A stretch of 64,000 nt of DNA from Oopsacas minuta (GCA_024704765.1 JAKMXF010000322.1:248001-312000); one strand, 5' to 3'; positions 1 to 63,194 are shown, counted from the stretch's first letter. Made by a program: numbers and translations. Notes: a model not told the origin generated them from the letters alone.

Positions 1-17
1 ATATTATAATCTTGTAG

Positions 18-3000
18 ATTTTTGGTTACCAACTGGACAAGACACTTACGCTCACACCGATCTCACTTTCTCAATCGGGAGCCTCACAAGCACGTCCACA
101 TACACAATTAATCCCGGTGTTGCCACCCACTTAGAAAGTATCATAATCACCCAATGGGTGTCTGTCAACAATCGTGATGTACGTGTAGTTTTGCAGGCCG
201 CAAACGATAATGATCAGACCAATATTGATCCCGCAACAATTCGAGTAGAAATTGATAGCCTAATAGACACTGTACCTTCAATTACAGGTGTTTGCACAGT
301 CAGCATTCCATCTGGCATTTGTTCAATTGTTCTTACCTTCCCTGAAAGTTGGCTATCCTCTCTAACGGAGGATTATCCTTACGCTATCTTGGTATCAGCC
401 CAATTATTTGATTCATTAACTATTCTCGGTCTTATTGATGCTCGTTATGAGGCTAGCTGTCCCTTCAATAACAATGTGTTCATCCACGTGCCGACATATT
501 CGCAGTTTTCAGGTTCATATGTATATATCCCTGTATATGGCAGAGCAACTGAAGGCATCAATAGCTATAGTATTGAGTTTTGGGATAGTTACTTATTGGA
601 ATTCGAAAGAGTTGAAAATTCAGAATATTTCATCTCAGAAGCAACTCTTGATTCTACCATTAGCGGTCATTTTTTCGTGTCAGGATCTACAACACGATTC
701 CCTATACAAGAAGGGACCATGGATTTACTGTTTACGGTTGTGTTGAAAGTACTCTCTTACAGTGAATGTCGAGATGAAACTTTGACTGCTCAAGTTATCT
801 TCCTATCAGATGGCCTACAACAATCTGTAAGTTTATATTCGTAAATATTTTGGCGGGGTTCCATGAGTGAAAAGTTAGGGGACGACAATCCCGATTGAAA
901 TACTTTTATTTTTAATATTTCACACATTTTTTGATAGCTTAACTTACCAATTCTAGAATTTTCATAATTTATATGTGTTATCCTATATTTGCAAGGTTAT
1001 TGGCAATGGAGCTGCTGCAGTTCATTACCCAACCTGTGGGACTAGCAGTTCAATTCGTGTCTGCCCGGATGATTCCCTAATATTATTCCCATATCTAACA
1101 TCTACTACACTTATCAACACAGAGAATATCGGCATACCAACGTCACCAACTCGCATCTATCTAAAGTCTGCTCTAAAGAGTGGTAAAGTTGTTGATGCAA
1201 ACGCTACGAATTGTTTATCTAGTGCACCTGGTGTTGCTGACTTATCAGCTGACTGTAAATGGGTAAGTTATATTACTGTTACATATTCTACAGATTGTCA
1301 CAACAATTATATATATTCCTATTTAGCTTACTTTCTCGAAAGCTCACAGTCAAGGAGCAGATAACTTCTTGCTAACTATTGAACAAGATAGCTTAACCAC
1401 AAGCATAACATTGGATATATGGTACCCACGATCTGTTACATACACAGATCAAAAGCAGGACGCATTAATCACAGACCCAGGAGCACAAGGTCGTAAACTA
1501 GTGCAGGGATACAGCACGTCCACCTGTGGTCTTGGCTACCAATCGCCAGAAATCTACGTTACAGCCGAATTCTGTGACGGATCATTTCTGAGTTGTCCCC
1601 ATAGACAGAATCTAGACATATCCCAGCTAGTACAGGATAGTATTACTTCGGAAGACGCCAATATACTTGACACAGTCAATGTGGGAGCTAGCATATACCT
1701 AGAGGTTTATCAACAAGGAGAAACTGGATTAGAACTCACTAATAGTCCAACGCATCGCATAACATTGAGCACAACTGGTAGCGTGACAACACAGGTCACA
1801 GATTTGGACGTACGCTTCTTTACTTCAATACAATCACTGGCTCCTGATTCAACTAATGCTACATTACTCGAGGCTACTGTTCAGCTAGCTACAGACTTTA
1901 CTATCCCTTATACACAGGCTATTGTTGTAGTGGATGCTGTGTTTGATGACGGATCTCGCATGAATCTTCGACCCGAACATGGCTTGGTTCTGTCATCAAC
2001 TAACGTGGATATTGTGGAGGTTATCAACGATGAAGAGGTTTGTTTATTGTTTGTTTTTGGCATTCCATGAGAAATTTGTTTCAGCTCCACATAATGTCCA
2101 TCTAAGCATGCGGGCGGGGTGGTGGTGGAGCTGAAACAATTTTCGTATTAACTTTAGTGTCTTACATATTATTCATATCTAGATTCGTGTTACTGGACCT
2201 GGACATGATCGTTACCTAGTCGCAACATGGAATTCCCCTTGTAACGGTAACGAAATATTTTCTAAACCAACAGTTATTCAAGTTGAATTTGACACTCCCG
2301 AAAGAATCGAACTTACAATAGATGAACCCACGATTGTCCGTGCTACAGACCCTGCATTCTTGTTCGGATACCCTTCGACTACAAATTTCTCTGTTATAGC
2401 ATACTTCAGTGGAAATCGTACTCTTGATATAACGGTGGATACGAAATGGGTCGCGATAAATGCTGACTCGTCAGTCGTTACTATTACTGGTAATCAAATT
2501 GCTATTAATCCTATTAATGCAATATATTCTGGAGATGTTACTCTAAATGCGAATTATAATTTCTTCAACTTGGCCAACTTTGCAGACTCTCAGTCCTTAA
2601 CTATCGCACGTTCTATTGGCATTTCTCTAGAACTTAGACCGTATCCAGCATTTCCAGGCAGTGAGCTAATGTCTGTCAGCACATCTCAAATATACCCCAA
2701 CACTTCAATGCGTCAGAGTTCTATCTTAGCAACGAGTCTGGATCTTAGTAATGGCGACCAAATACCGATTACACCAAATGGTACTTATACACTCAGTGAC
2801 TCCAATCTAGCAACCATAGACGGAGCAACCCTACAACCTGTTCAAGCTGGTAATCTAATTATTACAGCTGTCTTCTCCATTTATAATAGGAGCAAAACTT
2901 TGGACATACAAGACATTGATCTCTCCACTGTAACCTTTAGTGTTAGTGTAGTGAATATTGTTGGTAATACACTTCAAGGTATTGTTGGCTCAGAAAGTAA

Positions 3001-6000
3001 TTTTATTGGTGATGCGACGTTTGCTAATACATTTGGCGTAGAGTTTGTATTCCCTGAATTGTTCAATGAGGGGACCCCAGCCCTTCCTGGCTTCTTAACT
3101 TTTGAATCCGACGATCCATCTACGATTTCTATCGATGCCCAGACTGGTGTCGTAACTCTAGGACAGAATTCTATTGAGAATATGGTGATATTATCCGCGA
3201 CTACGGCGAATACTACCAAATTTACTTCTTTATTTGCTAACCTTCAACCAGAATTGGGAGATATTGATATTGGAGATGAGTTTGGTGTACCTATTCCACC
3301 AAAAACTGTAAGTTATGAGTTTCATTTACATTATCCCCCCTTTAACTAACAATTATAATCATTTGTAGTTCCTTCTCCTAAAATGCCTCTTATTCCTTCA
3401 CACAAATATGTTTAGTATTACAATAAGGATATCCTCGAATTCCCTTATAACATTTTGATAATCTGTCTGAAAAGTTTATTCCAATAAAATATTCAGTGAA
3501 ACTTCCATAAATGGGCAGTGGAAACTGAGTGAAAATTATATAGACCGAATTCCGATTCCCCTACAATTGAACCTCTACATTAACTGGGTAACCTTTTTCA
3601 GCGTTCTGGAACACGTTAATGGACGTTACCCTGTAATACATATTCGTTATTACTTCCTCTATTTTCTAGCTTTTTACACCATTCACTATTCCAATCTACC
3701 TTAATACAGATGGAAAAACCCTCGGTCTGGTTGATGTTTCGATAAATTTTCCAAACGGTAGCTTTTCATTTGTATCATTTACCCGAGGTCAAGATTGGCT
3801 GCAAGGAGATGTGTTTTACAACTCTGATCCAAAATATGATTTTTTCAACTTTGGTGGGTTAGTTGGAAACCTGGCAAACCCAGGGAGAATGCTTTTATGC
3901 GATCTAGAATTACTACCCTTAACAATTGGGACATACCAATTGGAAATTACAATCAATCAATTATCCGAGAAATCTCTAATTGTTGAAGAAATCGGAGATT
4001 TTATCGGGATGAATTCAATTTCGACACAGCACTCCATTGTTGTTACATCAGGATCCCGATCTGTCGAGACAAATTTCTTCCCAGTAGAGCGCCGGTTCAG
4101 AAGGATTGCCCCTGCACTCACACTTGGGGATATTAATGGTGACGGCTCTTTCGATATGAACGATGCTCAATTCTTGTCGTTGAGTTTACTAGCTACCTCA
4201 GATTTTTCTTCTGAGCAACTGGAATTGTCAGATTTAGATTTGAATGGGGAAATTAATTCGAATGACGTCACCTACCTTATCAAAGTTAATTTCGGCTTAC
4301 TACCATTCTTGTACAACTTCGTGCTGCTACCAGCTGATGATCCATTTTCAAATTGTGTCCTTACAGTTAGTGTATCTGCTTATGACTTTGATGGGCCTGT
4401 TGATGATTCCAGGATAAATATATTTGCTCTATTCATAACCAATGATACAGATTTTCATACTCAGTATGATTTAACTTCACTGGAATACGGAACCAAAACA
4501 AATACAGACTTTTCAACCCCAGTGAATGGAAAATGGGTTTCACTTGAAACTAATCCCAATGCGACAGATAATTTTGTCCTCCGTACTGACTTGAATGACA
4601 TAAACTCTACAGACATAGGTCTTGCTATTCACATTGTGTATTTCCCAGCCTATACAGAGATATATACAATATTCCTATCTGGCATTCAGACAGACTCATC
4701 TCCTTTATACCCATCATTTTTTGATATCATCGAGCTTGCTGATGTATCTCAATCAATAGAATTCACACCATTACGCGTGTTTGATAACACAATTCCAGAG
4801 GGCGTATGCTTCAATTACCATCCTCCCATATTCGATCAACTCGCCTACCCTATAACTACTCCACTCTCTGAGAATCATCCCATCAATTCCCTGATTGAAG
4901 TTGTTAGAGCTACTGATCAAGACACGAATATTAATGGTGTTATTCGATACTCTATAAATGCGATTAATTTCGCTGGAATCACTCAATCACCTTATCCACC
5001 AGTTCCAGTATCAGTCGACCCCATAAATGGATCAGTTTATGTAATTGGAGAGTTAGACCGTGACCTTTATGCAAGAATAGAATTTGTGATCTGGGCCATT
5101 GACCAAGGACCCCACCTTTCATCTCGTTACACCGCTACGACAACAATCCAAATCCTCACAATCGTTGACGTCAATGATAATGCACCCCTATTCGTATCAA
5201 ATCTCTTGTTCAATATAAATGAGAACACACCACCAACCACGCAAGTAGGCACTGTTACAGCCACTGATTCCGATGCCACTTCTCCCAATAATCAAGTCAC
5301 ATACTTAGTTGATGGTTCTTCAGGGCCATTTGTTGTATCCCAGACTGGAGTTATTACCGTAGGTCAATTTATCGACATTGATAACGGAAATCCTAGCGAA
5401 TACACATTTACAGTGATTGCAAGAGACGGCGGAAATCCTACATTATCATCAACAGCTAATGCCACTGTGAATATTAACGATCTTAACGATATAGCTCCCG
5501 AATTCCTGCCGCCATTCATTCTGAATATTCCCGAAGATGCTGCTACAAGCACTGTTATCGGTACAATACGAGCAAGGGATAATGATACTGATATTGCTCA
5601 TGCACAATTTACTTATTCTATAACTGGCGTTAAGTTGCTTGACGGAGATAAGAATCCTGTTAATCCAGATCTACTAAGTATGAACTTATTCTCCATAGAT
5701 GAAGATACAGGCAATTTGACATTGGAACAAGTAAGTTTGATTTATCCAAAAATTCTCGTATTTTGTAAATTTCAAATACTTTTTCGAATTGGTATTACTG
5801 TGGCAGACTGTACCATATATGTATAGCAGCCATAGCCCACAAATTGTCGATTTCATTGAAGGAAATGTGATAGCCTGATCCCAAAAATCTTCACGACAAT
5901 TTTCACACATTTATTCATATACGTATATTCAGGTTGTAATTTTGATATTTAAAAGCAGTTTTAAGAGCTTAAAATTGTGATTTTAAATGATTTGTGATTT

Positions 6001-9000
6001 TCTCTAGCCTTTGGATATTGAAACTGCTCAAGGCTACGAACTATTGATAAAAGCAACTGATCTTGATGTGGCAAATCAACTCGACTCATTTTCCACTTAT
6101 TACCTCTATGTCTGTGATGTAAACGATAATGCACCAATATTCCCACGAACTTCTTACTTAATTGACCTCCAAGAAATTACGAATGTTGGCGAAGCTGTGT
6201 TTTCAACTGGGAAAATTGACGCAGATTTTGGTTCATATTGTGGCACTGACACTGCACTCACAAACAATAATTATCTACTTAACATCACTATAGTGAACAG
6301 TGATCCATCCATATTTACAGTAGATAACGACCTGCAGGCCATTACCCTCCTTACAGAAGTCGACTTCGAAGCCCTTGGCACACAAACTTACTCTCTTATT
6401 ATACAAGTTGATGACATATCGCCTCCTTTCCAACCAAATCGAACGAATTTAACCATCACACTCGTAGACTCAAATGATAATGCACCGATTTTCGATGATC
6501 GATCATATTTCGCTGAAGTCCCAGAAGGATTGAAAAATGGTACTGAAGCTTTTATCACCGTCTCTGCAACAGATGAGGACTCCGGCTTAAACGGAGACGT
6601 AAAATTCAGAATTCTATCAATCTCACCTCCTCAAAATTTCACCATCGACGTAGATACAGGCGATATTACCACAGATGGGGTAATTACATTGGATGCTGAT
6701 GCCAATGACACACTATATACCTTATTAGTTGTGGCATATGACTTGGGTGTCCCAGAACAAAATGCTACTGTTACTGCAGAGATTTTAGTCACTAATACAA
6801 ATGATAATGTGCCAAAATTCGTCGACGTGGATGAGACTATAATTGAGAGCGCTTCTATTACTGTATTTGAAGATATTCCCAAGAATACAGCAGTTTATAC
6901 AGCACGTGCTGTTGATGGAGACCAAGATTTCCTGTATTTTTCAATTTCAAACGATCCAACAGGTACATTCACTATTGGTGAGATATCTGGTATAGTGTAT
7001 TCGGCAGCAGATGATTATTGTAATGACACAAGCTATACTTTGGCTGTAATTACAATTGAAGTGAGAGACCGTCTCGATCTTTCTGCAGCGAAATTTGCAA
7101 CCCTACCTCTTACTATTAACGTGGTTGATGTTAATTCCAATGCCCCACAATTTTGTCCATCCGTGTTCCCAGTTACTGCACCGTCTCCTCTCGTAAGCGG
7201 CGCTACCATTGGCGAATTAACACCATTTGATATTGACAGATGTAACAAGGGATTTGTATATTCAATTATCGGTGGCGCTGATGCTGGTAAATTCACATTC
7301 AACGTAAATAACCTTGAGACTACAACCGGCATTACCTTTACTGAGGGAGAAGAATTTGAGATTGAGGTAATGGTTAGTGATACAGGCTCTACAAATGTTC
7401 TTAGTTCAACTGCGACCGTTTTAATTGTGTTAACACAATTTGTACCAATCGAATTGGAAATTACAAACGGATATCTCACTTCCCTACCTAGTTACAGTCA
7501 ATACAGTGTAACTCAAGAGTCGGATTTGTTCACTCAAATTTCCCCCAATTTGGACGGATCCGTTTCTGCATCGCTTGGCACTCTAACTGATACTTTCAAG
7601 TTCAAACATACACCATTGCCAGCCACTGACTTCAAAGTTGATCTGATTTGTCCGATCTTATACGGTGACGTTGGTTATAACTTCCTATGGGTTTCTATCC
7701 AACGCAGGACTGAGCTTCAATCCACCGATATTGATGGTGATACTCAAATTATGGTAAAAGCTGAAAATGGGCCTCTGATTGTTGAAGAAATATTCACGAT
7801 TTCAGATCCAAATGGAATTGAAATTTTACAAATTCAATTTGAAGCTTCGTGGTTTGATATACCGTACAATCAGGATCTAAATTTGGAAATCAGTCTCGTA
7901 AGCACACCAGAGATTTCCCGTAACATTTCCTTCGAAATTAATCCATACTACGATTTACCAGACATTGATCCTTCTCTCGGTAACCTAATCTTTAGAATCC
8001 CTCAACGCAATCTATATCCAGGAGATATATTCCAGATTGAAGTGTATGGAGAAGCTTTAGGCTCAGAATTAGATAGTTTAGGTTTCTCAATTACATCCGA
8101 TAGCAGTGACATCACTTTCCTCAGCGTGGACGCCATACCTGGATGGTCTGTCGGATTTAGTTCCACCGGATTGACGGCAAATATCGCGGCATTCAGGGCT
8201 TCCCCAGGCACTGTAGAGGGCAAAAGATACTTATCGATCGATGCTCGAGTTGAGAACACGATTTCAGCTAGTCAAGTTGATGTCAGGATTAGTTACACGA
8301 TTGTACAGCTAAGTACAGCCCTCGAAGCTAGCGTACCATTGGAATCAACTCGATATGTCATTTCATATGAAGGGATAGCTGAATCTGGCCTACTTTTTAT
8401 AATACGTAAGTTTGTATCTGCAGTATACGCGGTTGCTAGTACACCACACATTGTCAATACAGCAGTGCTAACCAATAATCCAGTATTTCTATCCTATTCC
8501 GCAAATGCTGTTGTAGCGAGTGCTACGCCTTATCTAACGAATAACGTCGAAATTCTTTCGTGCACCAGTAATACAGGTGTAATTGAAACTGATTCAGGTT
8601 GTAATGCAAGACTTACCCCATCGACTGTGCCAACCAACGACCTTGAAAAACTCACTCTCACAATAAGCGTTAATGACCCTGACGTGATAGAGAGTCAATC
8701 TGATAACGCTAGTTATAGAATATGGACACCTTCTCTGGACGATATATCACTAGATGTCACTGATTCAACATTGAGTATTATTTCAAACTACGAACGCAGA
8801 GTCGCTGGTACCTGTTTATCTGTTTATCAAGAAGCGGACATATATGCTACTACAACACTCCAATACCCAACCGGATCTCCTGTGACAATCCGAATTGAAC
8901 AGCTGATCGCTGACCAGATTAGTCTAACACCTGATACTAGAATACAAAGGACTGGAACTACTATAACAGGATTAGCAGCTGGGGTAACTACACTTACATA

Positions 9001-12000
9001 CGGCTCAAAAACAGTCGAGGTAACCACATCTGCCACGCCAGTGAATGTAGATAGATTGAATGTACTCGCTGCTACAGGTATTACATTTTCACCTGATACT
9101 GAACCTAATTATCCAGTTGTTGGTACACAAAGTGTTGAAGTTGGATATGAACAAGTTTTAGATAGACCTGGCTTAACTGCAGCACTAATTGCCTATGCTA
9201 AATTCAGTGACGGTAATCATAGAATCGTTACGTCATCAGATGGCGTAGAATTCAGTTCCTCAGAGCCTACAGTCGCTACTGTAAGTGGATCAACACTGTC
9301 TATCACTGGGGAAGGAGCTGGTTGTTATATCGGCGTAATTTGGTCATCTCTTGATTCATGTCCAGGTGAAGTTGGTTCGGGAGAAGGATTCATTAATGTA
9401 GAGTTCGATGAACCGGACGACATCCAGTTAATTTTAACTGAAACCGAACTAGTACACATGGCTGATGAAGCTAGTGACCTGCTACCGCTAGAAACCGCGA
9501 TAACCGTCCGTCTCGTATACGGTAGTAACACAATTGATTTGACATCAGATTCAAGAACAGAGTATAGTTTTGAGAATTCGCGATTCCCCCTAACCGAGAT
9601 TGATTGTGGGGTTAATTGTAGAAAGTTTTCGGTCCAAAATCCTGATCATTCCGGCATAGCTACTATTCGTGTCAAATTCTCACATATCACTGCTTTCAAA
9701 GAAATTTTATTAGATATTTATAAATCGATTCGAATAGACTTTTCTTTTACACATGAACCAGCTTTCCCAGGTGCTTCTACCGCCAATGTTTTCCCTCTCA
9801 ACCCGATTGAGGATACAGGTATATTCCAAAAAGCTTCGGTCTCAGTTGACCTAATCCTTGAATCTGGTTTGAAGAGTCAGAATTTTGAGATTTCAACATC
9901 CTCTGATCTTTCCCTCACCACTAATGGTTCTAATATTCTTACGGTGGTGGATCTCATCCTATTGCCTCAGCAAAGCGGGGCTGCTTTATTGACTGGCGAC
10001 TTCAAATCCTTGTCCACTTCTAGAGAAATAATAATAAGTTCCATGTCTGTGGAAGTGGTTGATATTAGTGCTCTATTCTTTACAGACGGCGGCACTTTAT
10101 CTGGACAACAGGGTAATGAAGCGGATAGGTTTCTGATCAATATTGGATTGGATGATGGAACTTTTGTAAATGATATTTTCGCTTCTGGGAGCAACTATCT
10201 TCCCGATTTGTTAACATTCTCTTTTACTAATTACTTCTCGCTTAATGAAATGACCGGAATTTTGGTTATCAACGACAATTCACCTCGCGAAATTCTATAC
10301 ACAATAAGCTCAGATTTTCATATGGAAACATTCACATTCTACGCCAATCTGGAAGCATCCAATGGTGATTTGGATTTTGGTAAACAAACTGGATTACCCA
10401 TTGACCAGCCTGATGGTACAGCGACATCATTTAGTGCACCACTCATGATAAACAGTGGGAAATTGGTAGATGGTACGAAACGTGGCTTAGGTGGTGTAAA
10501 TGGCTACATTGAATTTGATGAGAATATATTTGAAGTAACATCTTTCACGAAACACTTATCATGGCCTGGAGATGTCCTAGATGTCAATATTGATTCTACC
10601 CCCGGACGTGTGTTATTTTCCGCACCTCTGAAAGCCTCTGAGTCTGAAGTTTTCGCGAGTTTATCAGACTCTGTTGAGATTTTCTCTATCGATATGAATT
10701 ACAAATCTGGAATAACTGGTTCCACATTCGACAGCACAGAGATTGTGACGTATATTGAAGATATGGTAGACAGTAGTACACCACCGAGTTCTATTGTAGA
10801 CGATGCCCAGGCAATCGCTGGTACTTTCTCCATTGGAAATATCACTCAGGGGGTCTCTAGACGTAGTGTAGGAATAGAGCCGGCTCGCACTAAGAGACAA
10901 ACTGATTGCGGTGGGAGCCTTGCGCCTGGCGACACTGACGGTGATTGTAGGTTTACAGTAGCCGATGTAACCTATGCTCTGAATTATATTGTAGAAGCTG
11001 CCGGTAATTTCCCTACGCCTGGAACTTATTACAGTGGAGCTAAACAGAGACAGTTAGATGAATTGGACCCGACTTTAGATGGCCTTATTAACTCAAACGA
11101 TCCAAGATATCTGAATAGGATAATAGTCGGTTTCCTTCCCTTCGTGCGGGATGTAGTCATTTTATCCACTCACGAATTTCTCCTATCTAACTGTAGAATT
11201 AGAATAGAAGCTACTATTCTTGATAAATCCAATTCATCGATAATAAATTCGAGGGAAGTTGCATTTTACGCTGGACTATTCGCGACAGAGCCTGCATTCG
11301 AAACAGATATATCAGCTGTTATTCCAGAGTCTAGTTATGGAAGCCAAGTTTCTGACACAGATCAGGATACGAATTTCCACGGTCAGTTCTATAGAACTGA
11401 ATATAACGATGGTAGATATCGTCTCCAATTACGCCCTGAGTTCGATAGTGACTATGATGAGATTGCTGTAATTTTAGCTGTTGCAACCATTAATAACCAA
11501 CTTGAAACTAGCCCAGAAAGAAGCTCAACTTTCTTTATTAATAGCAACACTCAGAAGAAATTCGCTCAAACTTTCTCGAAGACAATAATTGACAATACTG
11601 TATCACTTCAAGTACAGAAAACTGGTGGATTTAATCCATTACGTACTATATCCTACAACCTGACCTATAGTCAATGTAATAACGAGGCGAAACCAAATTT
11701 CACACAACCCTTCTATACTGGCACAGTTCGTGAAGATGCGTTTACAGGTTACGTTGTTTTACAAGTCATGGCTACTGATTCAGACAATTTCACTAATGCA
11801 GAGCTCGAATACTCACTGCCTTCACAACAAGTTAATGGTAAATTCACGATAAATTCAACTACTGGTGAAATATCTGTAGCTGATAGTCTAGATCGTGAGC
11901 TTGAGGATATCTATGAATTCACAGTTACTGCAAAAGACAAAGGTATCTCTCAAGTGCGAACTGGAGATGTTGATGTGAATATTACTATCCTTGATGTCAA

Positions 12001-15000
12001 TGATAATTCCCCGATATTCGAGTTTGACTTCTACGGATTTTATGAATTCTTTGAAAACGCTACATTAGGAACTTTAGTAGTAGTAGTTAAAGCTACTGAT
12101 GAGGATATTCTAAACAACGGACTGATCACCTATAGTCTAGATATGGATTGCGCCAAATATTTTAATGTGTCGAATAGTGGGACTGTAAGTATCGCCAATC
12201 CTTTAGATTATGAAGATGTCCAGGCTTTCCAATGCACCATTATTGCAACTGATAATGGTGTCACACCTAGGAACGACACCACTGACATCAACGTTGAAAT
12301 TAAACCTCTAAATGATTTGCCTCCCCAGTGCCCTCCAACTGTCGAGTTGTCGTTTGCTGCAAACGCGCCTAGAGACCATATTATTGCTATTTTGACCGCT
12401 AAAGATGATGACATAGGTCTTGACCATAATACTTTAGCTTACGAACTTGTTAATTCACACAATGGTTTATTTTATATAAATCAAATCTCTAATAATCAAG
12501 TTGAACTGAGGACAAATATCACTAGATACAACCCAGGTGAAATATACTACGTCACGCTCAATGTAACAGATTTAGTATGGCATTATTGTGTTACCCAGGT
12601 CACTATATTTGTTGAAGAAAGCTCCTACTTCGATTTCAGCTTCAGTGTCCCTAAAATCGCATATTTCCGTTCGCAGTCGCGATACAATTTTGTGGACGAG
12701 GTTTACGAACAAGATATTGGATTCTTTGTGGAAGACAAAGACACAACCAGTTTCGATGCATTTGGTGAACGAGCTGGACAAACTCGAAGCGCTAGGATCA
12801 CGAAGGCACCTCAAGAAGCATTCAGTGTAACAGGAGTAGTCCGTGGCTCTGATAATATTAACTACGATAGTCCTTGGGTAAGAGTGACTGCTCAATTTTC
12901 AAGTGAATCGGGTTCCACATACCTAAACGCCCCAACCAGTGCTTACATATCAATAACCTCCAATAATAGAGGGCTAGTAGACACAGCAGCTATTTGTTCT
13001 GTGGGTGTATTAACTGATGGTATTTGTACAGGAACAGTCGTGCTATCTTCCGAATGGTTCATGTTTGATGATATGGCAGGTGTTAGTATTACCCTAAACG
13101 GAATTGAAACCTACATTCAGGATATAGGTATAATTGTACAACCAAGCATCGATTCTTCTACAACTCAGAATCTAATGCTATCTGTACCGCATCGTGAGTT
13201 GTTCCCTTCAGACGAGTTTGAAGTTGTACTCAGTGCTTACACATATTATGAGCCTATTGGATACACAGTGGATATCGGTTACACAGCCGCCCAGCTTAGC
13301 ACAGTCGTCACACCGCACTATACACCCTCTCCCGGATGGCAGTGTACTCTAAATTCTATGTCTGAGAATAATTCTGTAGTTGAGAGATACGTTTGTGTTT
13401 TCCCTAATACTGATGATCTCGATCAAGGTCGTGTCGATAAATACACAGAACTTCTCACTATAAGATTCAAACTGAGTGCTGGTGCAACAGGTGGAGCCGT
13501 AGAATTTGAAACAAATGGTATTTCCCTTACCGCTATCAACGCGATTGTCTACAGTACTACATCTGGTGCGTCGATACACAAATATGATTCTAATGGATTT
13601 GTAGCTGCAGGTTCCGCGACGAATTATCCTTCAATTTATTTCCAAGAGGATTCAGAGATTCATGTTTTTGGATTTGTAGAAGATAGTGAGATTCTTAACG
13701 ATCTGCAAATTCTTGATGTCGCTACGAAAACAATTTCCGCTGGTATTGCGGTGAAAGGTGTTCGTAAGAACCCAGACACTCCACCAGCACTATTACTTAT
13801 TTCCGATTTCACATGTGAATCAAGTGATCAAACGGTTTTGAAAGTGTCGAACTGTATGCCTTTCCTCGATACTGAGACTGTCACTGGTAGTGATTCTGTA
13901 TCAGTAGAAATCTCTAGATCTGGTCAAATCATCACAACTGTACTATTCAGAGTTTGGATCCCTAGATTAATAACCGGAAACTATTTGGATGTTACTTTCT
14001 CAGACTCGATATTACAACCTATCTCAACATGTCCAGGTTTATACCAACAAACACGTGTCATTATACGCGCAGAATTCGAAACACCAAGCGAAGATCTTAG
14101 CGTTTTATACTCAGATTTCAGTGATATTTCAATTTCAATTCAGAGAAGCGAAGTTGCTCTTTACTCAAATGGAATTGTCACTGTAAACTCTAGTTTCTCT
14201 GAAACTTCCATCACAAATGTTCCCCTGTTTGTAATGAAAGGAGCTACTTCCATTGCTCAAGCTACTCTCACTGTCGATCCAACTTCAAATGTTACCCTTG
14301 AGGTCATTATACCTGAAGTTTTCACAGAAATGACTTTAGAATCCGCCCCAAGCGAAATTACAGATCTCTCTGGTGAAAGGCTATTTATCCGCGCTAAGCT
14401 AACTCAGAATTGTGACGCTGATCTGAAACCAAACTACGTCAGCACCAAAGCTATATTCAGTGACGGGCACACACAGGTGTTGGATAATCTCGTCAGTGAA
14501 TTGGAACTGAAACCATACCCTCTTATCCTCAGACACGCCTCTGGGCTAACACTAGAAGCTTACGGGTCAGGAAGTGGTCCTGTTGAAGTATGTTGGCAAT
14601 GTTCAGCTAATGCTGAGAAATGTGGTGAAACTAGTGTAACATGTTCTATTCCTCCTCCTGATGCCCAATACTTTGAAATTGACTCCCCCAAAATTGCCTT
14701 CCCATTTTCTGTAGCTGATTTAGCTGGCTATGCTAGTGTTGCTACCATTACGGTTATATCGCTTCAATACGGTTCCGAAATTAAAGATCTCCGTTTCGAT
14801 GATAGAACAATGATTACTATTGATGACCCTGAAGAGTTATTTTATTTCAATGACATAACTTTAGAATTTACCGCCCGTACGTCCACGCAATCTGGGTCCG
14901 CTAATATCAGTGTTACTTTCTCACAAGCACCTGACGTGGTCCTTACATCCGTATTACAACTTGTTAGGCATCAAGCCATTGTAGTAACTCTTTCGCCATT

Positions 15001-18000
15001 CCCTTCCTATCTTGGTAGTTCTTCTATTAGCATCGATACTCTAAGGAAAATTACAGGAACAAATGTATACCAACGTGGACTACTATCTGCTGTCCTGATT
15101 ACTACTACTAATGACTTCATTTCTATTTCTCAAATAGCCAACTATACAACTAATGACAGCATTTTGAATATAGGATCTGATCAGTCTGTTACTCCTATTA
15201 CATCTGGCCTGGTTGACATTACAGTCGAACTCTATAACCTGAATGAAAATATCACTGTCAATGTTACGAATGATCTTGTTGGCCTTACTTTTATCGATCG
15301 GTTCGAATTGCCATCAAACACACTTATTGGAGGTTACAATGAAACTCGGCTATTTACATTGGATATCACATTGGAAGATGGGACAAAAATTTTTGACTTT
15401 TTCTCAGATAGTTACTATGGAGCAAATCAAAAGCTAATTACCTTGAATGCTACAACTGATAATCGTGGTGCTATACAGCTACAACAGTATGGCCACGTGG
15501 CAATTCTTGATAATTATTACGGTTTAGTTACAGTGAAAGCTACTGGTGGTAATGTTGAAGCGTTCACTTCGTTCGCAGTCAATCTCGATCCCGCCCTTGG
15601 CGATTTTGATATTGGTGAAAGAACTGGCATCCCTGTTGGGCCATTGGCTGAAGGATCCACCTATACGATTCCTATTCGTGTAAACGCAGGCTCAAGTGTA
15701 TCTGCTTTTGATTTGGAAATAATTTTCGACACAGATGTGTTCGAACCTAGTAGAGCAAATGTCTACTATTCAGGGCAAGTGGCAATTGAATATGACATTC
15801 CATCCAACCCAAATATTTACAAAATAGTTGGTTTATTAGACTCTTCTATCAGCGGACTTGTAGATTTCGGAGATTTTGAATTAACAGTGAAGAGTGACGT
15901 AGATCTTGACTTAACTACAGTCCGTTTGTTAATTGTGGAATTAGTTGACAACAACGAGAACATCGTAACCTCCGATACATACAGTGTAGCCAGTGACCTA
16001 GAAATAGAAATCCTTGGTGATAGGAGAAGAAGTATTGATTTATTGCCCAGAAAGCAGAGAACTCCGAGAATCCGTCGAACACCCGGTGAAATACCTTGTG
16101 GAAAATTTGGAGATATCGATGGCAATAACGCATTCACCGTTCTTGACGCACAAATGGGTCGCGATTATCTTGCAAATCCTGTTGGTCCTCAACCAGCAGG
16201 CCTTGACGTAAACCAGGATGGTCTTGCCGATATCAATGATATCATATATCTTATCCGAGGATTAGCATTCTCTCTTCCATTCCTTTGTAACGTTACGGTA
16301 ACCCCGGCAAACCTGTCAGATTGTACTTTGACAATTAGAATTACGCTTGAGAATTCAGACGGACTTTCCCCATCACCGGACCACACTTTTCCCCATGTAA
16401 TGATTCAGCATAATTACATCAATTCCCAATACAACGACTGGGATGTATCTATAGTTAAGTTTGGTGCCAAATCTAATCCGACACCAAATAGTGTAACACC
16501 ACGTGGTGGTCTATGGGAAGCATATCCCAATGGGAATGGTACTTTCTTGGTGAAAGTTGATACTGCATTATCTGCTTTCTCTATTGGCCTTACCGTCGTG
16601 TTGATAACAGCCAACACCCAATTTGTATCTCTCAGATCAAGGTTCGTATCTTTCTATAAACCAAACAATGCATTTAACTACAATCAAATCCCAAATTTCG
16701 ACATAACTTCAGTTCGTCAGCCGCTCGTCTCACAATCTGATAGTTTTATTGGATCTAGCGGTGGTTATGACCCATTTGTCACTTTTGACAATACCCTGAG
16801 GTCAGATTTATGCCGTTATACGGGGCGACAATATAGCGTTGAAGAAGATGCGGATCCAAGAACTTACGTTGGAGATGTAGGCGCTCTCACTTTAGGGGGT
16901 TCACCGGCCCGCGAATATGAACTAGTCCATCTTGATCCTGTTCCTGTCAATTCCCATTTCATGACAGCTTCAGTAGACATGATAGAAGTCATTCAAACTA
17001 GGGTAGATCTCGATGCAGAGCAATTCGTATTCTATAGCATAGAAATCGAAGCTGCAACGAATATTTATGGGAATTCTGGTAATGGAAGCGAATTCTACTC
17101 ACGTTCTGCTAAATTCAATATTACAGTTATTGATGTTAATGACAGTCCACCTGTGTTTACTGTAACTAAAGAATCTTTCGTAGAATATGAGAATATTGCT
17201 GTCGGAACTATTCTTTTCCAGTTTGAAGCGGAAGACGATGATGAAGGTTTGAATGGATTGATTACATTCAGTATATCTCGTGGTGTAGGAAAGGAGGACT
17301 TCTTTATAAACGCAACATCTGGAGAGCTATCGATTGCTATGTCTCTTGACCGAGAGAGACAGTTCGCTTATCAATTGGAGATACACATCCAAGACAATCC
17401 GGCTATAACCGAACCAAAAACTGCAACATATAATACTACTGTAACTGTATTGGATATCAATGATAATGTGCCTGATATTGTTAGGCCCAGTGGGGAATTC
17501 TTAATTGAAGAGAATAGAACTCCACCTGAATTAATATCAAATGATTTTTTCACAATTATCGATAATGATAACAGCGATAATGGTTCAATTTCTGCTTTTA
17601 TTATTTCTGAAATAAGAGATGATCAAAATCTTAGTGTTGCTATATCGTTATTCCAGTTTGAAATACAATCTCAGGTAAGGAATTTTTCATGTAATTTTTG
17701 AGTCTTTGAGCCATTTTTGGTTCTGAAAATGCTCTGTCCATTATTTTAATTGTACTCACGCATGACACATTACTCTACTTTAGACAACATTCAGAATACA
17801 AACTAATGCAACATTTGACTACGAAGTATCAACCTTCTATGATATCATAATAGAAGCCACTGATGCCGGCACTCCACAATTGACTGGCACTACTGCTATC
17901 CGTGTTAACATATTTGACTTGAACGACAATCCACCTGAATTCAATCAGTCTGTCTATGAACTCTATGCTAACTCGGATAGTTATAATGGACAAAGAATTG

Positions 18001-21000
18001 GGATTGTTACTGGAGAAGATTTGGATTCAGATCCTAACGATAAACTGAGGTACGAATTGGAAGGGTCTGATGCTGGATTCTTCACAGTCAATGAGGAGAC
18101 TGGAGAGTTATATACGGACCGTTCACTGGATAGAGCAATAGGTAAGTTCATACCACAATACAGTGTAACCTCCACGAATTGGGCATATGGAAACGGGGAA
18201 CTTTGGCAACGGAGTGAAAATATATATATATATATATAGCAAATTCCTCGTAGCATATAATTGAACCTCCACAATCGGGGAATTTGGCAGAAACGGGGTA
18301 TTTTCTGTTATGATATGTATTCTCTCTCTAGGTTCATTTTACTCTCTTATCATAAGAGCTACTGACTCCCCAATCAATCCAGCAGATGAGCAAAACGGTA
18401 CAGCAAGACTACAGATATACGTCACGAGTAACGATATATTATCAACACATTTTGAATACGGTCTAGCCAGCAACAGTATAACTCGTGAGAATGCTACATC
18501 ATACAAGGTCCCGATTAGTTTCCTCCTAGCCGACACGCCTGCTACTCTACACGCTTCTTTCGATACAGCTCAAGCTGTAGGAGATATTGTACTTACCCCA
18601 TCCACTCTAAATCCTTCAGGATTTGTGTATATGCTATTGCAGGATGGACTCTATCATGAAGACAAGCTATTGACAGTGGTAGTGCGAGCTGAAGATTCTA
18701 GATTATACCATAGAAATACTGGTAAGTGATAATAACCTATGCCATCATGAAGAAATGGTGTCAAAATGTCTGTAATTCTAAAACCTTGAGTGTTGATCAT
18801 GAAATGAACTTCTGATTTTGCGAAAAAATCTGACCACGTGTTAGAAACTATAACCACTGTTTGTTAGACAAGTTTTGGGTGATTGAATTTGATTCATGTT
18901 TGTTGGTTTGATAATTGAATGAATCTATTATAGGCACAACCATTGATATTGAGGCCTACCCAATTTCGTCAAGCGAAACTGGAGTAATTACTGATCAATG
19001 TACAACTAGCAAGGACACTGGTTTCTGTGTACTTCGTCTCCAAATACCTGACTACTGGTTCAATTCAAGCTTCACTAACGCATTCCTTACATTCAAACAG
19101 AATGGATTTGAACAGTCAAACAGTGTACCGATCCATTACCCATTCGTATCGTCTTCACAGCCAACTGAAGACAGTGCATTTTTTCTAGTTGCGCCTTCTA
19201 CAACCTATTACAGCGGGCAAACCTTTTACGTAGAGGGATATGTCTTAGTGCTTGGCTTCACTGTAATAGAATCAATAGAAGTTATCATCAACGCTAACAC
19301 GAACTTCGGACCGAAGAATACCTGGGTTATTCCTTCTACTTGGGTAGAAATTGATTGTAAGTTTGTCACTGAATAATAAGAAACAATTCCCAAAACTCTA
19401 TTTATACCTTTACAAATGCCTATTCCCGCAGGTAGCCAATCAACAACTACCCCTGCTGGCAGTGCTAGACTGTGTGTTGAGCCTTCTTCTACGTTTGATG
19501 GATTCACTGAACCTCTAAAATTCTTTACTATTCCACTTATCGTGAGTTAACTTTGTAGAACGTTAAGCACGGGCAAACGTATACAGACAATATATCAATT
19601 TTCAATGGGTCTATATAGATGTTTTGGGACCTATTGACCTATTTGAGTGCTGTGGATGCCGGTTACAGTGGTGGGGCATGAGTTATTAAACTGGGGCATA
19701 CTTACATTAATGAAGTGGGGGCACATGCTCCAACTGGTACCCACCCTCTCGCCCCTCTGGCGGGTTATAAAAACGTGTATGGTACTCCCAAAATGGTTCT
19801 TATAACCGGCATCCACTGTTTAACTGAAATCATAACAAATTTTAAATTTGAATTTTATTGTTTTTCGCTCTTTCAGGTATCCGCTTTAAGCCAACCTGCC
19901 TTCGCTAGAATCTCCATCTCAGACTTAGCAGTGTCTGTTAGAATCGATACTCAAGTTGTAACTCTACAGAGTCCTGGGTACTACATCAAAGACAGGGAAA
20001 CTCCAGTTCCAATGGCGACTGTATCACCAGCTCAAGTCCGTGTCGAACCCTTGAACTCTCAATACTTTTACATTGTTAATTACAAAACAAATTCTCTTAT
20101 AAATACAGCTGTATTTGATGGTACAAGAGTATCCGCGGATATTGATGTGTATGGATTCTTGAGTGAATATTCCAGAGAGGTTTGTTGTTATTTACTATAT
20201 ATGTATTATGTATACACTGTAATCCAAAGCGTATTGACATTATCCATGATCTTAATCAAATCTCACTGATATATTTTTACAAATTCGACAACTGCGATAT
20301 TCTATCCATTTTCCATTCCTTTTTTCTGAGGTTCAATCGTCTATATTCCTTCTAGGCTAATCCAAGTAATATCGAAGTAGAAATCCTAACTTCTAGTTTA
20401 CAATGTGCTTCAAGTTCACTCGGGATACTTAAAGTAGAATTGGACTGTTCTGAGATATATCTTGACGGCACAGAGACAAACGGAGGAGAAGTAGAGATCT
20501 CTATTACATCCCCCACCTCTATCCTAAATAATGGACTCATCCCTAAAGCTTTTATATGGTATCCAGACGATGTCACTATTACGTCATCAGATACAATACT
20601 TAATCAAGTTGATTATGCTTGTGCTGCTTCTGTGAGGTTATACCAATCTACTGCATTATATGTATCAGCTATATATAGTACTGGCGTGTCAGGGGAGGTT
20701 GAATTTAAAGCAGATGTTACTTCTAGAGCTAATGTGAGTTGTTTGTTTGTTTGTTTGTACGCCTCTTTGCCTCTTTGTTTGTCTGTTTGTTTATCTACAG
20801 TGGAGTTCGCCTATCAGCAAATCGTATTTTGTACGTATTTATTTCATTTGTTAGTCGAGGAATATTTCCAATCCAAATTGGGATCTAATTCCTTGAAAAT
20901 TGATACTAAACGGGAAATCCACTGTATCTCTCTAATATCTATTTGTTTTGTTGTTTATTGTTGATTACTACTCTACAATATAATAGATCGTTTCTGACAA

Positions 21001-24000
21001 TACTCTACTCAAAATCGCCAAAACATCTGTACTAAGCCCGCCTAAAGCTGGCCCAACATTTGCCCGCCCAGAGCCTTTCCTATCAGCTGATTTGACAGTA
21101 GAATTACGCGTAGAGCACAGTTCAGGAGCAAATTTCCCAAAAAGTTATCCACTACAGATAAGACAGAATAATGTTACTATAAAAGCTCTGCAGATTAAGA
21201 TTATTTCTAGAGTTGGATTCTTTGTCAGTGACACTAGTCCAGGACCTTTCCAAGAACAAGATGTGAGTTTTGTTTATTGTCATAACTTCGCTTTACGCGG
21301 CTTGCGGAATTTCTTGTCCGCGGGCGCTTTGCGTTCTAATATTTTGTATTATAATTAACCTGTGTCAGAGCCTAAATCTGTTTTGACACCTATCCCAGAG
21401 ATATCGCTTAGATCTTATCGCATTCTACGCACATGCTAAGTCTCTACTCTTGCCATTTCCTCAATCAATTCCATTTGTTTTCCTAGGCTACAATATTCTA
21501 TGACGAAGATCTGATATATTCAGCACAGCCTGCACCAGTAGAAGGCTACTTAGTCTACTCAGACGGACACAAAGAGCCGCTATATCCCTCTCTACCCTTT
21601 ACAGATATTAGCGGAATAACCAGTAGTAATTCCTCTATCAATATAGATAATACAGGTAGGAGACTAGTAGTAACAGCACGTAATACAGGACATACTGATG
21701 TATGGGCTACAGTGGATTTCTGTGGAGAGACATATACTGCAGCTACTTCTGTAGATGTGAGTTTGATTAATATATTTGTATTATTATTATCCTGCAGAAA
21801 ATTGTAGTTGCTTTTTCACCCATGGCCATTAGTCTAGTACAGTTGTTCCCAACCCAGCTGGGGTCTATTACCCCTTGGTGGTCCACGGACGACAGCGGGG
21901 ATCTGTAATTGTTTTGCGGTCTATGGGGAGGGCTCTACGGGTGAAGAAGGTTGTGAATCGCCTGTCTAGCACGCTAATAACATTCTCATTTCATATTTTC
22001 ATGAGATAAATAAAGAACTATTTTGTGGAACCTCGGGATTACGGTCGCCCTAATTATTGAATATAGAAATGTTAATGCCTTTAGGAAGGAACTTAAAATG
22101 TGGCATATCCAAATTTATATCCTCTCTCTTTCTCAGGTATTCCTCTCTACAACTCATCCTACCTTCATCTCAGCCTCATACCCCGGTAGTATCACTGAGA
22201 ACTCTGCTATAGGATCTAGCGTACTTACAATTAAAGCTACAAACCCGCAATCTGTCCTACGATCTGAATTACTCTACTCCCTATACCCAGATAATAATGC
22301 GTTTACTGTTAATGCATACACAGGCGTAATCAATACTAAAATAAACCTTGACTACGAATCTGGACCTCAGGTATGTAGCATACATTCGAATATTTAAGTG
22401 GAGTTATTTATGCAATATTTCTTGTTCCTATAGAGCTATACATTCACTGCTCGAGTTACAGACTTCGAGCAAAGACGTTTGTGTACTAATCCTGATGGAA
22501 CCTGTGATAGTTGTAATGTTACTTGTTTCGGAGAGACAACTGTAAGTATATTTTGTAGTTTTGTATTATTTTTGTGGTTACTTATGTCTCTTTTGTATTA
22601 TTTTAATTAGGTTACAGTCCAGATAATTGACGAGAACGATAATCCTCCAGTATGTGTGGTTCAGACAGAACCTGTACTCCTTGATATTGAATCTGTTCCA
22701 CCGAAATATCTCCTAACAGTAACAGTTACAGATGCTGATTCAGGGGATGCTAATCAAGCTACTTCATTTGAGTTATTCACCACTGAATTCGAAGACAGGT
22801 AATTAACAAATATTTCTGATATTACGGGAATTGACTGTATTTATTTCCTTTATTATTGTAGATTTGCAGTTGACTCTGATACAGGAGATTTCAGTCAGAT
22901 TGGCAACCAAACAGCTCGTAATCTCGATCTCACAATTCGCGTAAAAGCATCTCAAACAGCTACACTATTCGATACTTGTGATGTACTAGTTGAGCTGTAC
23001 TACTTTACAAGTACCATTATATTATCAGCATGCCCTATTACACAAGATGCTGACGTCACTGTTGTAGTAGACGTACTGCCACCCTATGTATTTGATGTTG
23101 ATGATATTGGGACTGTTTCTATTGCTGGAATTGAAGATTCAGAGTAAGTATTGATAATGTAGTTAATCGGGGTCATTGCTGGATATTTCCAGTTAATTGC
23201 TTGGCCCCAAATCTTTTGTATATGATTATTTTCACACCTTTTCATATAGGACTCCATCCTGTCAAGACTTGACTCTTATCTTCAAAGACTCAGATGATAA
23301 TGTGTTGAATCCAACTGACGTATTTATGAGTATTTTAGCGAACTCAGCAAATATTGAGTCTGATTTGTTGGCTTTGAATATCGGAAATATTGTAAGTATA
23401 CAAATACCCCGCTATATACACTCAGGATAGCTTAATATGAACATTCTCTTGCTCTTATTATTTATTATAACAAGATTTTTGGTAACTCGGGGTTCACAGT
23501 AAGCGAGCCTGACTGTACTAGTAACCTTTATTTAAAATGAATACGCTTATTTCTAGTCCTTCTATTTGGGTGTAATATTTCACCAGTTCACTTCCTGGAA
23601 GTATTTTCAGTCTACAAATACGATAGCTCAAATATTATCTACTTAGAACTTGTATTTTCAATTCTCCTACTCGTAAAACAGGAATTATAGCCATTTATTG
23701 CTATTAGTATTAGTGTATTGTTTCTATTCTCTAGACATTCATCAATAATGGAGTGTTACCTACCGTAGTACCGCCAACTCCTGCAGATCTAGAAGGTTGG
23801 ATGATAGCTATTATCGTCCTTGTGGTTGTTATCCTGATCCTGATATGTCTTGCTATTCCTCTCATATTCTATCTGAGACGATATAATAGGTAAGATGCTT
23901 ATTCTAATAGCGAATTTCCCCAAATATTCAGTTTGAATATTTTCAATGTTTTATTTTACTATTTTCGCAGACAATTGAAGGAGGAGCAAGAGAGATTATG

Positions 24001-24647
24001 GAATCAACGTAAATCTGTACCGACTGGATACGGCGGCCTAGCTGAAGCAGAATTTGTTTACGATCTGGAAGGGAACTTAGTTTTCAGTCAACAAGGTGAT
24101 ATACCCTTGCAACAGAAGAAATCTACTCTTGATGATGCACCTTGGAAAGGTAAATTGTTAAATAAATTATTGATACAAATATTTAGTCAACTCAAGGGGC
24201 CTAGCTCTATTTGTTTTTTACTCCGTTTCCAGAGGCCCTGTTTGTATAAACGATGAAATATGTTACTTTAACGGTTTGGCCCATATTTGTACAATTTCAA
24301 ACTTCTATATAAGCGGGTATTTCGGGAGTTGACTGTATTATGTTTGAAACTTTGAATCGCAAAAACAAGAAATTTATATTATGTACTTCTTAGGAAAAGA
24401 TTTTGATGATATAGAAGGAGGAAAATCACGGAAACCCTGGCAACAAAAATGGGCCAGAAGTCCAGAAAACCCCCTCTACGATTCTAAGGAGTACCTCGCG
24501 GACTTCCAGAACCCTTTAACAGACGATGAAGGGAAAAGTGGGACAGCAGCCAAGACCCCAACAAAAGGAAGTCGGGCCCGAAAGTCTACAGAAATCGGGC
24601 CTTCGATTGGCGCAGAGGAATCCTACTTAAACCCAACAGCTAAATAA
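18..24647 (+). CDS. Giant coherin-type cadherin (cadherin repeats + TMEM132-like cohesin/Ig modules + cohesin-dockerin cassettes + TM); 5'-partial, about 6,900 aa inside the window
   Basis: Hand-spliced GT-AG exons: 18-826, 996-1262, 1327-2037, 2183-3307, 3670-5730, 6008-17674, 17784-18141, 18332-18721, 18934-19356, 19432-19541, 19877-20179, 20356-20733, 20987-21262, 21487-21756, 22137-22370, 22434-22541, 22611-22798, 22862-23143, 23250-23391, 23475-23498, 23735-23889, 23971-24149, 24394-24647. All phases are compatible and the chain ends in TAA at 24645-24647. It has many cadherin motifs (DxNDNxP, LDRE/LDYE, AxDxD), one TM helix and a short tail. The base-18 acceptor shows the gene continues upstream. 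Confidence 0.9.
2076..2139. mobile_element. Short MITE with 15-bp perfect inverted ends (TTGTTTCAGCTCCAC)
   Basis: TTGTTTCAGCTCCAC...GTGGAGCTGAAACAA; appears to be an internally deleted version of 53405-53678. Confidence 0.65.
3239..4310 (+). other. Cohesin - furin site (RFRR) - dockerin cassette A
   Basis: NLQPELGDIDIG...FTIPIYLNTDGKTLGLVDVSINFP is cohesin-like. RRFRR lies at 4090-4104. Two 12-residue Ca loops follow: DINGDGSFDMND and DLDLNGEINSND. Confidence 0.8.
4820..7440 (+). other. Cadherin repeat block 1 (7 EC repeats)
   Basis: Successive linkers DVNDNAP, DLNDIAP, DVNDNAP, DSNDNAP, NTNDNVP and DVNSNAP, with LDRD/LDIE/VDFE motifs. Confidence 0.85.
10346..11143 (+). other. Cohesin - furin site (RTKR) - dockerin cassette B
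   Basis: NLEASNGDLDFG...FSAPLMINSG...GVNGYIEFDENIFEV is cohesin-like. RTKR lies at 10886-10897. The loops are DTDGDCRFTVAD and DPTLDGLINSND. Confidence 0.8.
11680..12610 (+). other. Cadherin repeat block 2 (3 EC repeats)
   Basis: LDRE, DVNDNSP, LDYE and LNDLPP motifs. Confidence 0.85.
15581..16282 (+). other. Cohesin - furin site (RIRR) - dockerin cassette C
   Basis: NLDPALGDFDIG...YTIPIRVNAGSSVSAFDLEIIFDTDVFE is cohesin-like. RKQR lies at 16049-16060 and RIRR at 16067-16078. The loops are DIDGNNAFTVLD and DVNQDGLADIND. Confidence 0.82.
16815..18430 (+). other. Cadherin repeat block 3 (4 EC repeats)
   Basis: DVNDSPP, LDRE, DINDNVP, FDYE and DLNDNPP motifs. Confidence 0.85.
21840..21964. 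mobile_element. hAT-like MITE (CAGYKGTTCCCAACC-type termini)
   Basis: CAGTTGTTCCCAACC...GGTTGTGAATCGCCTG. Related sequence occurs at ~24828-24878, ~27981-28149 and ~48976-49070 (CAGCGGTTCCCAACCTTTT...CCCATAGACTGCAA). Confidence 0.55.
22137..22990 (+). other. Cadherin repeat block 4 (2 membrane-proximal EC repeats)
   Basis: ITENS, LDYE, DENDNPP and VTDADSG motifs across four small exons. Confidence 0.75.
23798..23875 (+). other. Transmembrane helix of the coherin
   Basis: WMIAIIVLVVVILILICLAIPLIFYL followed by basic RRYNR. Confidence 0.9.
24262..24336. mobile_element. MITE family 1 partial copy (last coherin intron)
   Basis: GTTACTTTAACGGTTTGGCCCATATTTGTACAA...GGGAGTTGACTG-TA. Confidence 0.65.
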
Positions 24648-48280: not shown

Positions 48281-48412
48281 TCTATAAAGTTAGCTCTAAA
48301 CAGTAGATTATTGATCAAATATGCAAAAATGGTCATTCAGAAGTTACGTGACGTAACCAAGGGGAGGTATAGACAATGTATAACAGCCCTATTTATATAA
48401 TATCACTAATTA

Positions 48413-48530
48413 CAGTAAACTCCTGTCATAACCAATTAGGATATAACGAAACTCCCTTCCGACGAAGTAATTCTTTACTCCGCTTATAATGAAATGAAAC
48501 TGGGGTCTTCGTTGTAACGAGAGTTTATTT
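48413..48530. mobile_element. Related TA-flanked MITE (CAGTAAACTC termini)
   Basis: TA-CAGTAAACTCCTGTCATAAC...GTTGTAACGAGAGTTTATT inverted ends. Confidence 0.5.
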
Positions 48531-51208: not shown

Positions 51209-51285
51209 CAGAGGCGTAGCTAGCTTTTCCTTTGGGGTTGCTGACAATGACCCCGGGGTTGCCAGCAACCCTAGCTACGCATATG
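51209..51285. mobile_element. Small MITE-like inverted-repeat element
   Basis: CAGAGGCGTAGCTAG...CTAGCTACGCATATG, with a 10-bp perfect inverted core. Confidence 0.5.
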
Positions 51286-51789: not shown

Positions 51790-51862
51790 GATTGAAGATT
51801 GAAGATTGAAGATTAAAGATTGAAGATTGAAGAATTAAAGATTGAAGAATTGAAGATTGAAG
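51790..51862 (+). repeat. (GAAGATT)n-type tandem repeat
   Basis: About 10 degenerate copies of TTGAAGA. Confidence 0.85.

Positions 51863-59118: not shown

Positions 59119-63194
<4,076 letters not shown>

Follow-up and report, generated by a model that had tools for sequence, protein, structure and literature searches.

The window analyzed here is a 64,000-nucleotide stretch of Oopsacas minuta DNA (GCA_024704765.1 JAKMXF010000322.1:248001-312000). A giant cadherin gene on its plus strand carries the same cassette three times, each copy consisting of a cohesin (about 150 residues), a basic loop, a dockerin (about 65 residues), and a beta-sandwich domain, designated X (about 165 residues). The cohesins and dockerins are genuine cohesin and dockerin folds, and the loops between them carry basic sites of the proprotein convertase type. 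We lean modestly toward explaining this arrangement as a cut loop with a clasp, in which the cohesin and dockerin-X would hold the pieces of the cut protein together non-covalently.

Three cassettes in one cadherin gene

Cassettes A (3236-3307 plus 3670-4788), B (10343-11653), and C (15575-16789) are mutually 24 to 27% identical over about 400 residues, and a six-frame profile scan showed that the window holds exactly three. The initial annotation had proposed three such cohesin-basic loop-dockerin units within one cadherin, and both their mutual alignment and the family profiles bear this out, as Pfam and fold comparison do for the identity of the domains. Pfam Dockerin_1 (PF00404, curated cut-off 22.9 bits) matched cassette A at 36.8 bits and cassette C at 24.7 bits, and Pfam Cohesin (PF00963, curated cut-off 24.1 bits) matched cassette C at 25.5 bits. 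At these cut-offs, cassette B had no Pfam match of any kind and cohesin A had no match to Pfam Cohesin. Profiles built from the homologs of other species alone nevertheless recognized all three domains (cohesin, dockerin, and X) in every cassette, E-values ranging from 3e-9 to 4e-30; cohesins A and B matched the cassette-cohesin profile of other species at 4e-21 and 6e-19, respectively, and dockerin B reached 64 bits with the cassette-dockerin profile. Read directly from the sequence, each of the six 12-residue dockerin calcium loops begins and ends with Asp (positions 1 and 12) and carries an acidic or amide residue at position 5. At position 3 all have Asp or Asn, apart from the second loop of dockerin B, which has Thr.

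The domain boundaries, all on the plus strand, were set mostly by the family profiles. Cohesin A is divided between two exons. Its first part (3236..3307) covers profile positions 1-23, an unspliced match reaching position 30 at nucleotide 3325, beyond the predicted donor, and its second part (3670..4056) covers positions 28-154. The predicted phase 0 intron between them (3308..3669, GTAAGT...TAG) is placed by its terminal dinucleotides, by the frame, and by a profile match that continues across it; the RNA-like sequencing run described below has zero depth over 3122-3676, which spans this intron. Dockerin A follows at 4114..4302, recognized by both Pfam and the family profile, and X domain A at 4306..4788, recognized by the cassette alignment and the family profile. 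Cassette B comprises a cohesin at 10343..10828 (family profile, 56 to 62 bits), a dockerin at 10901..11137 (58 to 64 bits), and an X domain at 11141..11653 (family profile). Cassette C comprises a cohesin at 15578..16027 and a dockerin at 16103..16279, both assigned by Pfam and via the structure model, and an X domain at 16280..16789, a generic beta-sandwich whose best unrelated structural match has a Z score of about 6.

Structure model of cassette C

Structure modeling was done for cassette C, using AlphaFold2 with a 72-sequence alignment. The model of the whole cassette (405 residues) has a mean predicted local distance difference test score (pLDDT) of 90.8 and a predicted template modeling score (pTM) of 0.89. 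Residues 7-149 of the model match solved type I cohesins with a Z score of 14.8 and a root mean square deviation (rmsd) of 2.1 Å, with 127 to 130 of about 141 residues aligned. The top matches include 6kge_A and 3ul4_A, and the top 24 are all cohesins or cohesin-like modules, mostly of type I. A separate model of dockerin-X (pLDDT 91.3, pTM 0.88) was searched against one representative per cluster of solved structures, and the ten best matches were all dockerins, the top one being 3ul4_B (Z score 9.8, rmsd 2.1 Å, 61 of 63 residues). The best cohesin and dockerin matches include both chains of one Clostridium thermocellum type I complex. Dockerin C forms two loop-helix repeats in the model, helices 189-200 and 220-230 coming after its calcium loops. 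A Foldseek search with the dockerin-X model gave nothing below an E-value of 1e-3, and X stays a generic beta-sandwich. Shape searches of AlphaFold DB and the ESM Atlas returned cohesin or dockerin parts only and no structural twin of the whole cassette.

The loop between cohesin and dockerin has a different character in the model. Residues 150-170 have pLDDT values of about 59 to 64, and residues 148-188 are without secondary structure. The loop is probably accessible, since it is modeled in this unstructured form and at low confidence. In the predicted topology it sits between extracellular cadherin and immunoglobulin (Ig) modules, upstream of a single transmembrane helix. The cohesin and dockerin-X, on the other side of the comparison, are modeled as one compact unit, which would fit the pieces staying joined after a cut. 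From the pTM of 0.89 over 405 residues we infer that the cohesin is not free, in the model, relative to dockerin-X, which has a pTM of 0.88 alone. Cohesins B and C contain no cysteines and so cannot be disulfide-tied across a predicted cut, which would likewise suit non-covalent holding.

Convertase-type sites in the loops

The pattern R-x-[KR]-R has three matches in 5,768 translated residues, where 0.28 would be expected by composition, and each match lies in a cohesin-dockerin loop. Sequence shuffles reached three matches in 0.25% of cases. A chance origin of the sites was considered and is ruled out by the excess over expectation and by the location of all three within the loops. The three matches are the sites named in the initial annotation, RFRR at 4093..4104, RTKR at 10886..10897, and RIRR at 16067..16078, all on the plus strand and in the coding frame. 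Loops B and C each follow a two-site plan. In loop B, an upstream dibasic site, S-R-R/S (10859..10864), precedes RTKR/Q; in loop C, an upstream basic site, D-R-R-R/S (16022..16030), recognized from the loop sequence and ortholog comparison, precedes RIRR/T. In loop A (4057-4113), RFRR has RR just before it and Ile at P1', the position after the scissile bond, and the upstream dibasic pair has been lost, reading GSRS versus SRRS or ARRS in the orthologs.

Seven orthologs, with 50 to 61% overall identity, keep both site positions in B and C, and the spacer between them varies freely. The RRS of the upstream site in loop B is present in all seven. In these seven, almost no other such motif occurs in about 3,900 residues. 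Orthologs of cassette A carry RRAR, RIKR, or RAKR. Over all orthologs compared, at 50 to 69% identity, the sites persist, and their Arg codons differ synonymously between species.

Cassettes and sites in relatives

A search of 1.84 billion representative proteins with a three-cassette profile yielded 714 relatives, in which the profile usually matches the whole cassette as one stretch, with 2 to 5 cassettes per protein. Site statistics were taken from 183 cassettes of 120 representative proteins, aligned from the 150 best of the 714. The full R-x-K/R-R motif is present in 115 of the 183 loops, R-x-x-R in 136, and at least K/R-R in 151. The density of the motif is 23.4 per 1,000 residues in the loops versus 0.18 in the other 397,000 residues, about a 130-fold difference. 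When residues were shuffled within each loop, 21±4 loops (maximum, 31) bore the motif, against 115 observed. Such shuffling keeps the charge yet loses the motif, which shows selection on residue order and not on charge alone; basic composition by itself was thus ruled out as an explanation of the motif. By these sequence comparisons, selection acts on the basic sites as a motif. The site conservation between cohesin and dockerin that was put forward earlier as a check is found in the orthologs and in most distant homologs.

The loops are Arg-rich (14% R) and are about 20 to 25 residues long in the window protein, with a median of 40 in the relatives. Two separated site clusters flank a short spacer in 45 of the 183, and the consensus of the 72-sequence alignment reads RxRRS...RxRR. 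P1' after the second site is mostly A, Q, S, or N. P2 is R in 104 of the 115 motif-bearing loops and otherwise K, the restriction to these two being set by the search motif. Most homologs also share several cysteines: a C-x2-PPC-x2-C cluster downstream of the second site, one Cys within the first calcium loop, and another as the first residue of the cohesin. The window protein has lost most of these conserved cysteines, and each of its three cohesins starts with Ala.

Named members of the family come from Monosiga brevicollis, an acanthoecid choanoflagellate, the calcareous sponge Sycon ciliatum, and the haptophyte Prymnesium parvum. In the P. parvum protein (KAL1521827.1, 4,778 residues), a near-identical cassette, with RRR and ARR pairs in its loop, comes after each of the three TMEM132 modules, and cadherin repeats are absent. 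The cassette module thus extends beyond animals and choanoflagellates, and the unit of TMEM132 module and cassette either predates its union with cadherins or is independent of it.

Proposed mechanism and alternative explanations

We propose that each cassette is a compact three-domain clasp, built from a type-I-like cohesin, a calcium-loop dockerin, and the beta-sandwich X, with a flexible loop joining the last cohesin strand to the first dockerin calcium loop. The loop would offer a dibasic or R-x-R-R site just past the cohesin and an R-x-K/R-R site just ahead of the dockerin, and a furin/kexin-type convertase would cut it in the secretory pathway. Use of both sites would excise a spacer of about 12 to 16 residues. 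The polypeptide would become four segments, those lying between cuts within the window being 2,172 and 1,727 residues long, and each inner segment would start with dockerin-X and end with a cohesin. A pre-formed non-covalent interface between cohesin and dockerin-X, probably calcium-dependent, would then hold the segments. We regard the cleavage step as quite likely, because the loop is predicted to be unstructured, belongs to the extracellular portion of a secretory protein, and carries a selected convertase consensus; we are less sure that the pieces would stay joined. The structure model makes the neighboring cohesin and dockerin putative binding partners, and the junction may be calcium-dependent and may have a mechanical role, for example as a break-away joint. 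The initial annotation had called its junctions "exchangeable," which is speculation, and its description of the system as "self-processing" does not hold, as the cassettes yielded no autoproteolytic module and the sites match the consensus of proprotein convertases, which would act in trans.

Several observations weigh against this proposal. The pTM would also be compatible with a cohesin packed on X, rather than with the dockerin on the canonical cohesin face, and AlphaFold2 confidence is distinct from binding affinity. The signal peptide lies outside the window. Cleavage is a prediction in every species. The site of cassette A looks the weakest and may be cut less efficiently than those of B and C; by textbook furin rules, Ile at P1' and the absence of an upstream dibasic site make a poorer substrate. 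In the relatives, 68 of the 183 homologous loops are without R-x-K/R-R, 32 of them without any K/R-R, and in a subfamily of about 7,400 to 7,950 residues the first cassettes are without basic sites, the last often having one. With about 37% of homologous cassettes lacking the full motif, cleavage is not obligatory for the module. To judge by their loops, the proteins of about 7,900 residues look like natural uncut versions of the clasp. The existence of uncut modules in relatives suggests that the clasp forms first and that cutting was added to it in a lineage-variable manner, turning a tethered clasp into a separable joint.

A different fate for the cut segments is that they are released and bind non-neighboring partners, which could be other cassettes, paralogous receptors, or TMEM132-type cohesins, whether on the same cell or on a different one; much as a cellulosome assembles, this would build head-to-tail chains or cross-links. 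The inner fragments would indeed each bear one dockerin and one cohesin, the super-modules each hold a second, TMEM132-type cohesin that has no obvious partner, and excision of a spacer at two sites would free both ends. We consider such re-sorting unlikely, however, since the adjacent cohesin and dockerin-X are modeled as one confident unit (pTM 0.89) and since the cohesin-dockerin-X unit occurs in many homologs that have no cut site, which argues for pre-formed pairing within the cassette.

It is less probable again that the loops go uncut and that their basic clusters bind sulfated glycans or acidic partners, or that the loop is a hidden-length tether freed when cohesin and dockerin are pulled apart. 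The high Arg content of the loops and the third of homologous loops that are without the full motif would suit either function, but neither sits well with the fall from 115 to 21±4 motif-bearing loops under a shuffle that preserves charge, with the bias of P1' to A, Q, S, or N, or with a motif that is some 130-fold rarer in the remaining 397,000 residues. Very improbable, in our judgment, is a cut loop with disulfides from neighboring domains holding its pieces, an arrangement like that of integrin alpha chains and the insulin receptor. Most homologs do have a Cys at the first cohesin position and the C-x2-PPC-x2-C cluster after the second site, and integrin alpha chains are among the weak fold matches. 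Those integrin matches, though, have rmsd values above 17 Å and reflect a generic beta-sandwich, and in the window protein the first cohesin position is Ala throughout; a disulfide tie via the cohesin was rejected, as cohesins B and C have no cysteine.

Beyond the window protein, the clasp with a cut loop can be set in a wider and more tentative frame, which we consider possible though somewhat doubtful. The succession of TMEM132 module, cohesin, cleavable loop, dockerin, and X may be an ancient eukaryotic break-away joint that arose before animals. Chains of segments would be held only by calcium-dependent cohesin-dockerin contacts, and these would set a rupture force or a calcium threshold for cell-cell or cell-matrix adhesion.

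Gene and genomic context

The giant cadherin gene occupies the plus strand between the start of the window and position 24,640 or so and is incomplete at its 5' end. Its in-window part (1..24640) was delineated by open stretches, Pfam matches to cadherin and TMEM132 families, and RNA-like contigs, and consists of a few huge exons, the 3' end encoding a transmembrane helix followed by a cytoplasmic tail. By Pfam searches of the open stretches, the predicted product is a single-pass type I membrane protein with many cadherin repeats and TMEM132-type Ig modules. The predicted transmembrane helix (23798..23875, plus strand) is a hydrophobic run followed by RRYNR, found by reading the open stretch 23735-23890. 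Contigs from the source sample (one run) behave like RNA, covering exons only and containing a GT..AG joint, 5730->6008, that removes an intron between cadherin exons (5731..6007, plus strand) and across which the reading frame continues. The gene is therefore transcribed.

TMEM132-like modules precede every cassette (1-3235, 7400-10340, and 12700-15570), with weak to clear Pfam matches to the second, fourth, and sixth TMEM132 Ig domains. The module preceding cassette C has an Ig_TMEM132_4th match at about nucleotides 13800-13970. The one before cassette B contains a TMEM132-type cohesin-like domain (7991..8317, plus strand) that scores 13.9 bits with the cohesin family profile and is weakly related to the cohesins that stand before dockerins. 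A fourth TMEM132-like module (18265-21800) comes after cassette C, with cadherins and the membrane helix downstream of it; the six-frame profile scan of the window found no fourth cassette after it.

Elsewhere in the window, an intron-less gene for a CUE-domain protein (47186-48280, minus strand) is conserved in the same set of related assemblies, and neighboring exons at 55135-55599 and 59513-59992, both on the minus strand, code for SH3 and RhoGAP domains. The region 48000-52000 is strongly AT-rich, with a GC content of 0.23 to 0.29 versus about 0.38 elsewhere in the window. An open frame of 249 residues (32131-32880, minus strand) has a marginal Pfam FliT match (31.3 bits, cut-off 29.5 bits) that is probably a coiled-coil artifact.

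Comparison with known systems

The initial annotation supposed that a cleave-and-dock logic had gone undescribed, but cutting and holding is already known for the Fat cadherins. In human FAT1 and Drosophila Fat, furin-type S1 processing in the secretory pathway cleaves the chain at a basic site, and the fragments remain non-covalently associated at the cell surface (PMC3953070). The window protein resembles them in being a giant type I adhesion receptor with a basic cut site, at which cutting is predicted. It differs in having three predicted cuts per chain, each inside a cohesin-loop-dockerin module that would serve as the holder, and the cassette loops often have two sites that would excise a spacer. 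Notch, at its S1 site, and the LAR-type receptor phosphatases follow the same cut-and-hold logic. In the literature searched, what appears to be new is the cohesin-dockerin-X unit as a holder, its threefold repetition in one chain, the excision of a spacer at two sites, and the deep conservation of the arrangement.

Cohesin-dockerin pairs are among the strongest non-covalent protein connectors, and we know of no role for them outside bacterial cellulosomes. The window protein shares with the bacterial cellulosomal type I complexes (3UL4, 1OHZ, 6KGE) both folds and the dockerin's duplicated unit of calcium loop and helix. In cellulosomes, cohesin and dockerin are on different proteins and enzymes are assembled onto scaffoldins, whereas in the window protein they are neighbors in one eukaryotic adhesion protein, their pairing is predicted, and X follows. 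Cohesins and dockerins alternate 1:1 along the chain, and Pfam found no enzyme domains, which sets it apart from a cellulosome.

The nearest non-eukaryotic look-alikes by language-model features are bacterial two-domain proteins of 180 to 230 residues, in which one cohesin is directly followed by one dockerin (ESM Atlas score, 0.91 to 0.95). They are also among the AlphaFold DB fold matches, and their clusters span Bacillota, Chloroflexota, Bacteroidota, and candidate phyla. Non-cellulosomal bacterial proteins of this two-domain type were reportedly described by Peer et al. in 2009. They are possible ancestors of the eukaryotic cassette. Unlike the cassette, they are without convertase sites, X, and a cadherin or TMEM132 context, and judging by their length the loop is shorter or missing; their global superposition on the cassette model is poor, with template modeling scores below 0.3.

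A further close comparison is with the coherins, cadherins that have a cohesin; dockerin homologues are undetectable in vertebrates (PMC6030884). The window protein, like the coherins, combines cadherin repeats, cohesin, and TMEM132-type Ig modules in one protein, and it may also have a hedgling-type N-terminal domain, its N-terminus lying outside the window. The coherin and TMEM132 literature that was searched contains no description of a dockerin partner, of X, or of cut sites, with the proviso that Nichols 2012 and Peer 2009 may mention dockerin or sites. We know of no partner for the cohesin of animal TMEM132 proteins and early cadherins. We propose that the partner is the adjacent dockerin in the same chain, that the link between the two is cut at a conserved protease site, and that the result is a probably calcium-sensitive joint that predates animals.

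The GAIN domain of adhesion G-protein-coupled receptors (GPCRs) and the SEA domain of mucins offer a last parallel, each being a non-covalent junction in an adhesion protein and a possible mechanical break point. GAIN and SEA cut themselves, whereas the sites in the window protein fit the consensus of a trans-acting protease. No Pfam family for either was found in or near the cassettes, even at E-values up to 10, and self-processing was rejected for want of an autoproteolytic domain. If the proposal is true, the cassette would add a new holding device to the cut-and-hold receptors such as Fat, Notch, and the adhesion GPCRs, and would give a molecular handle on how sponges and choanoflagellates adhere in a calcium-dependent way. 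It would also provide protein engineering with a natural eukaryotic cohesin-dockerin pair compatible with the secretory pathway. On the wider reading as an ancient break-away joint, the cassette would represent the first physiological role of cohesin-dockerin in eukaryotes. It would also join GAIN/SEA autoproteolysis and the Notch heterodimerization domain as a third type of hold-together junction.

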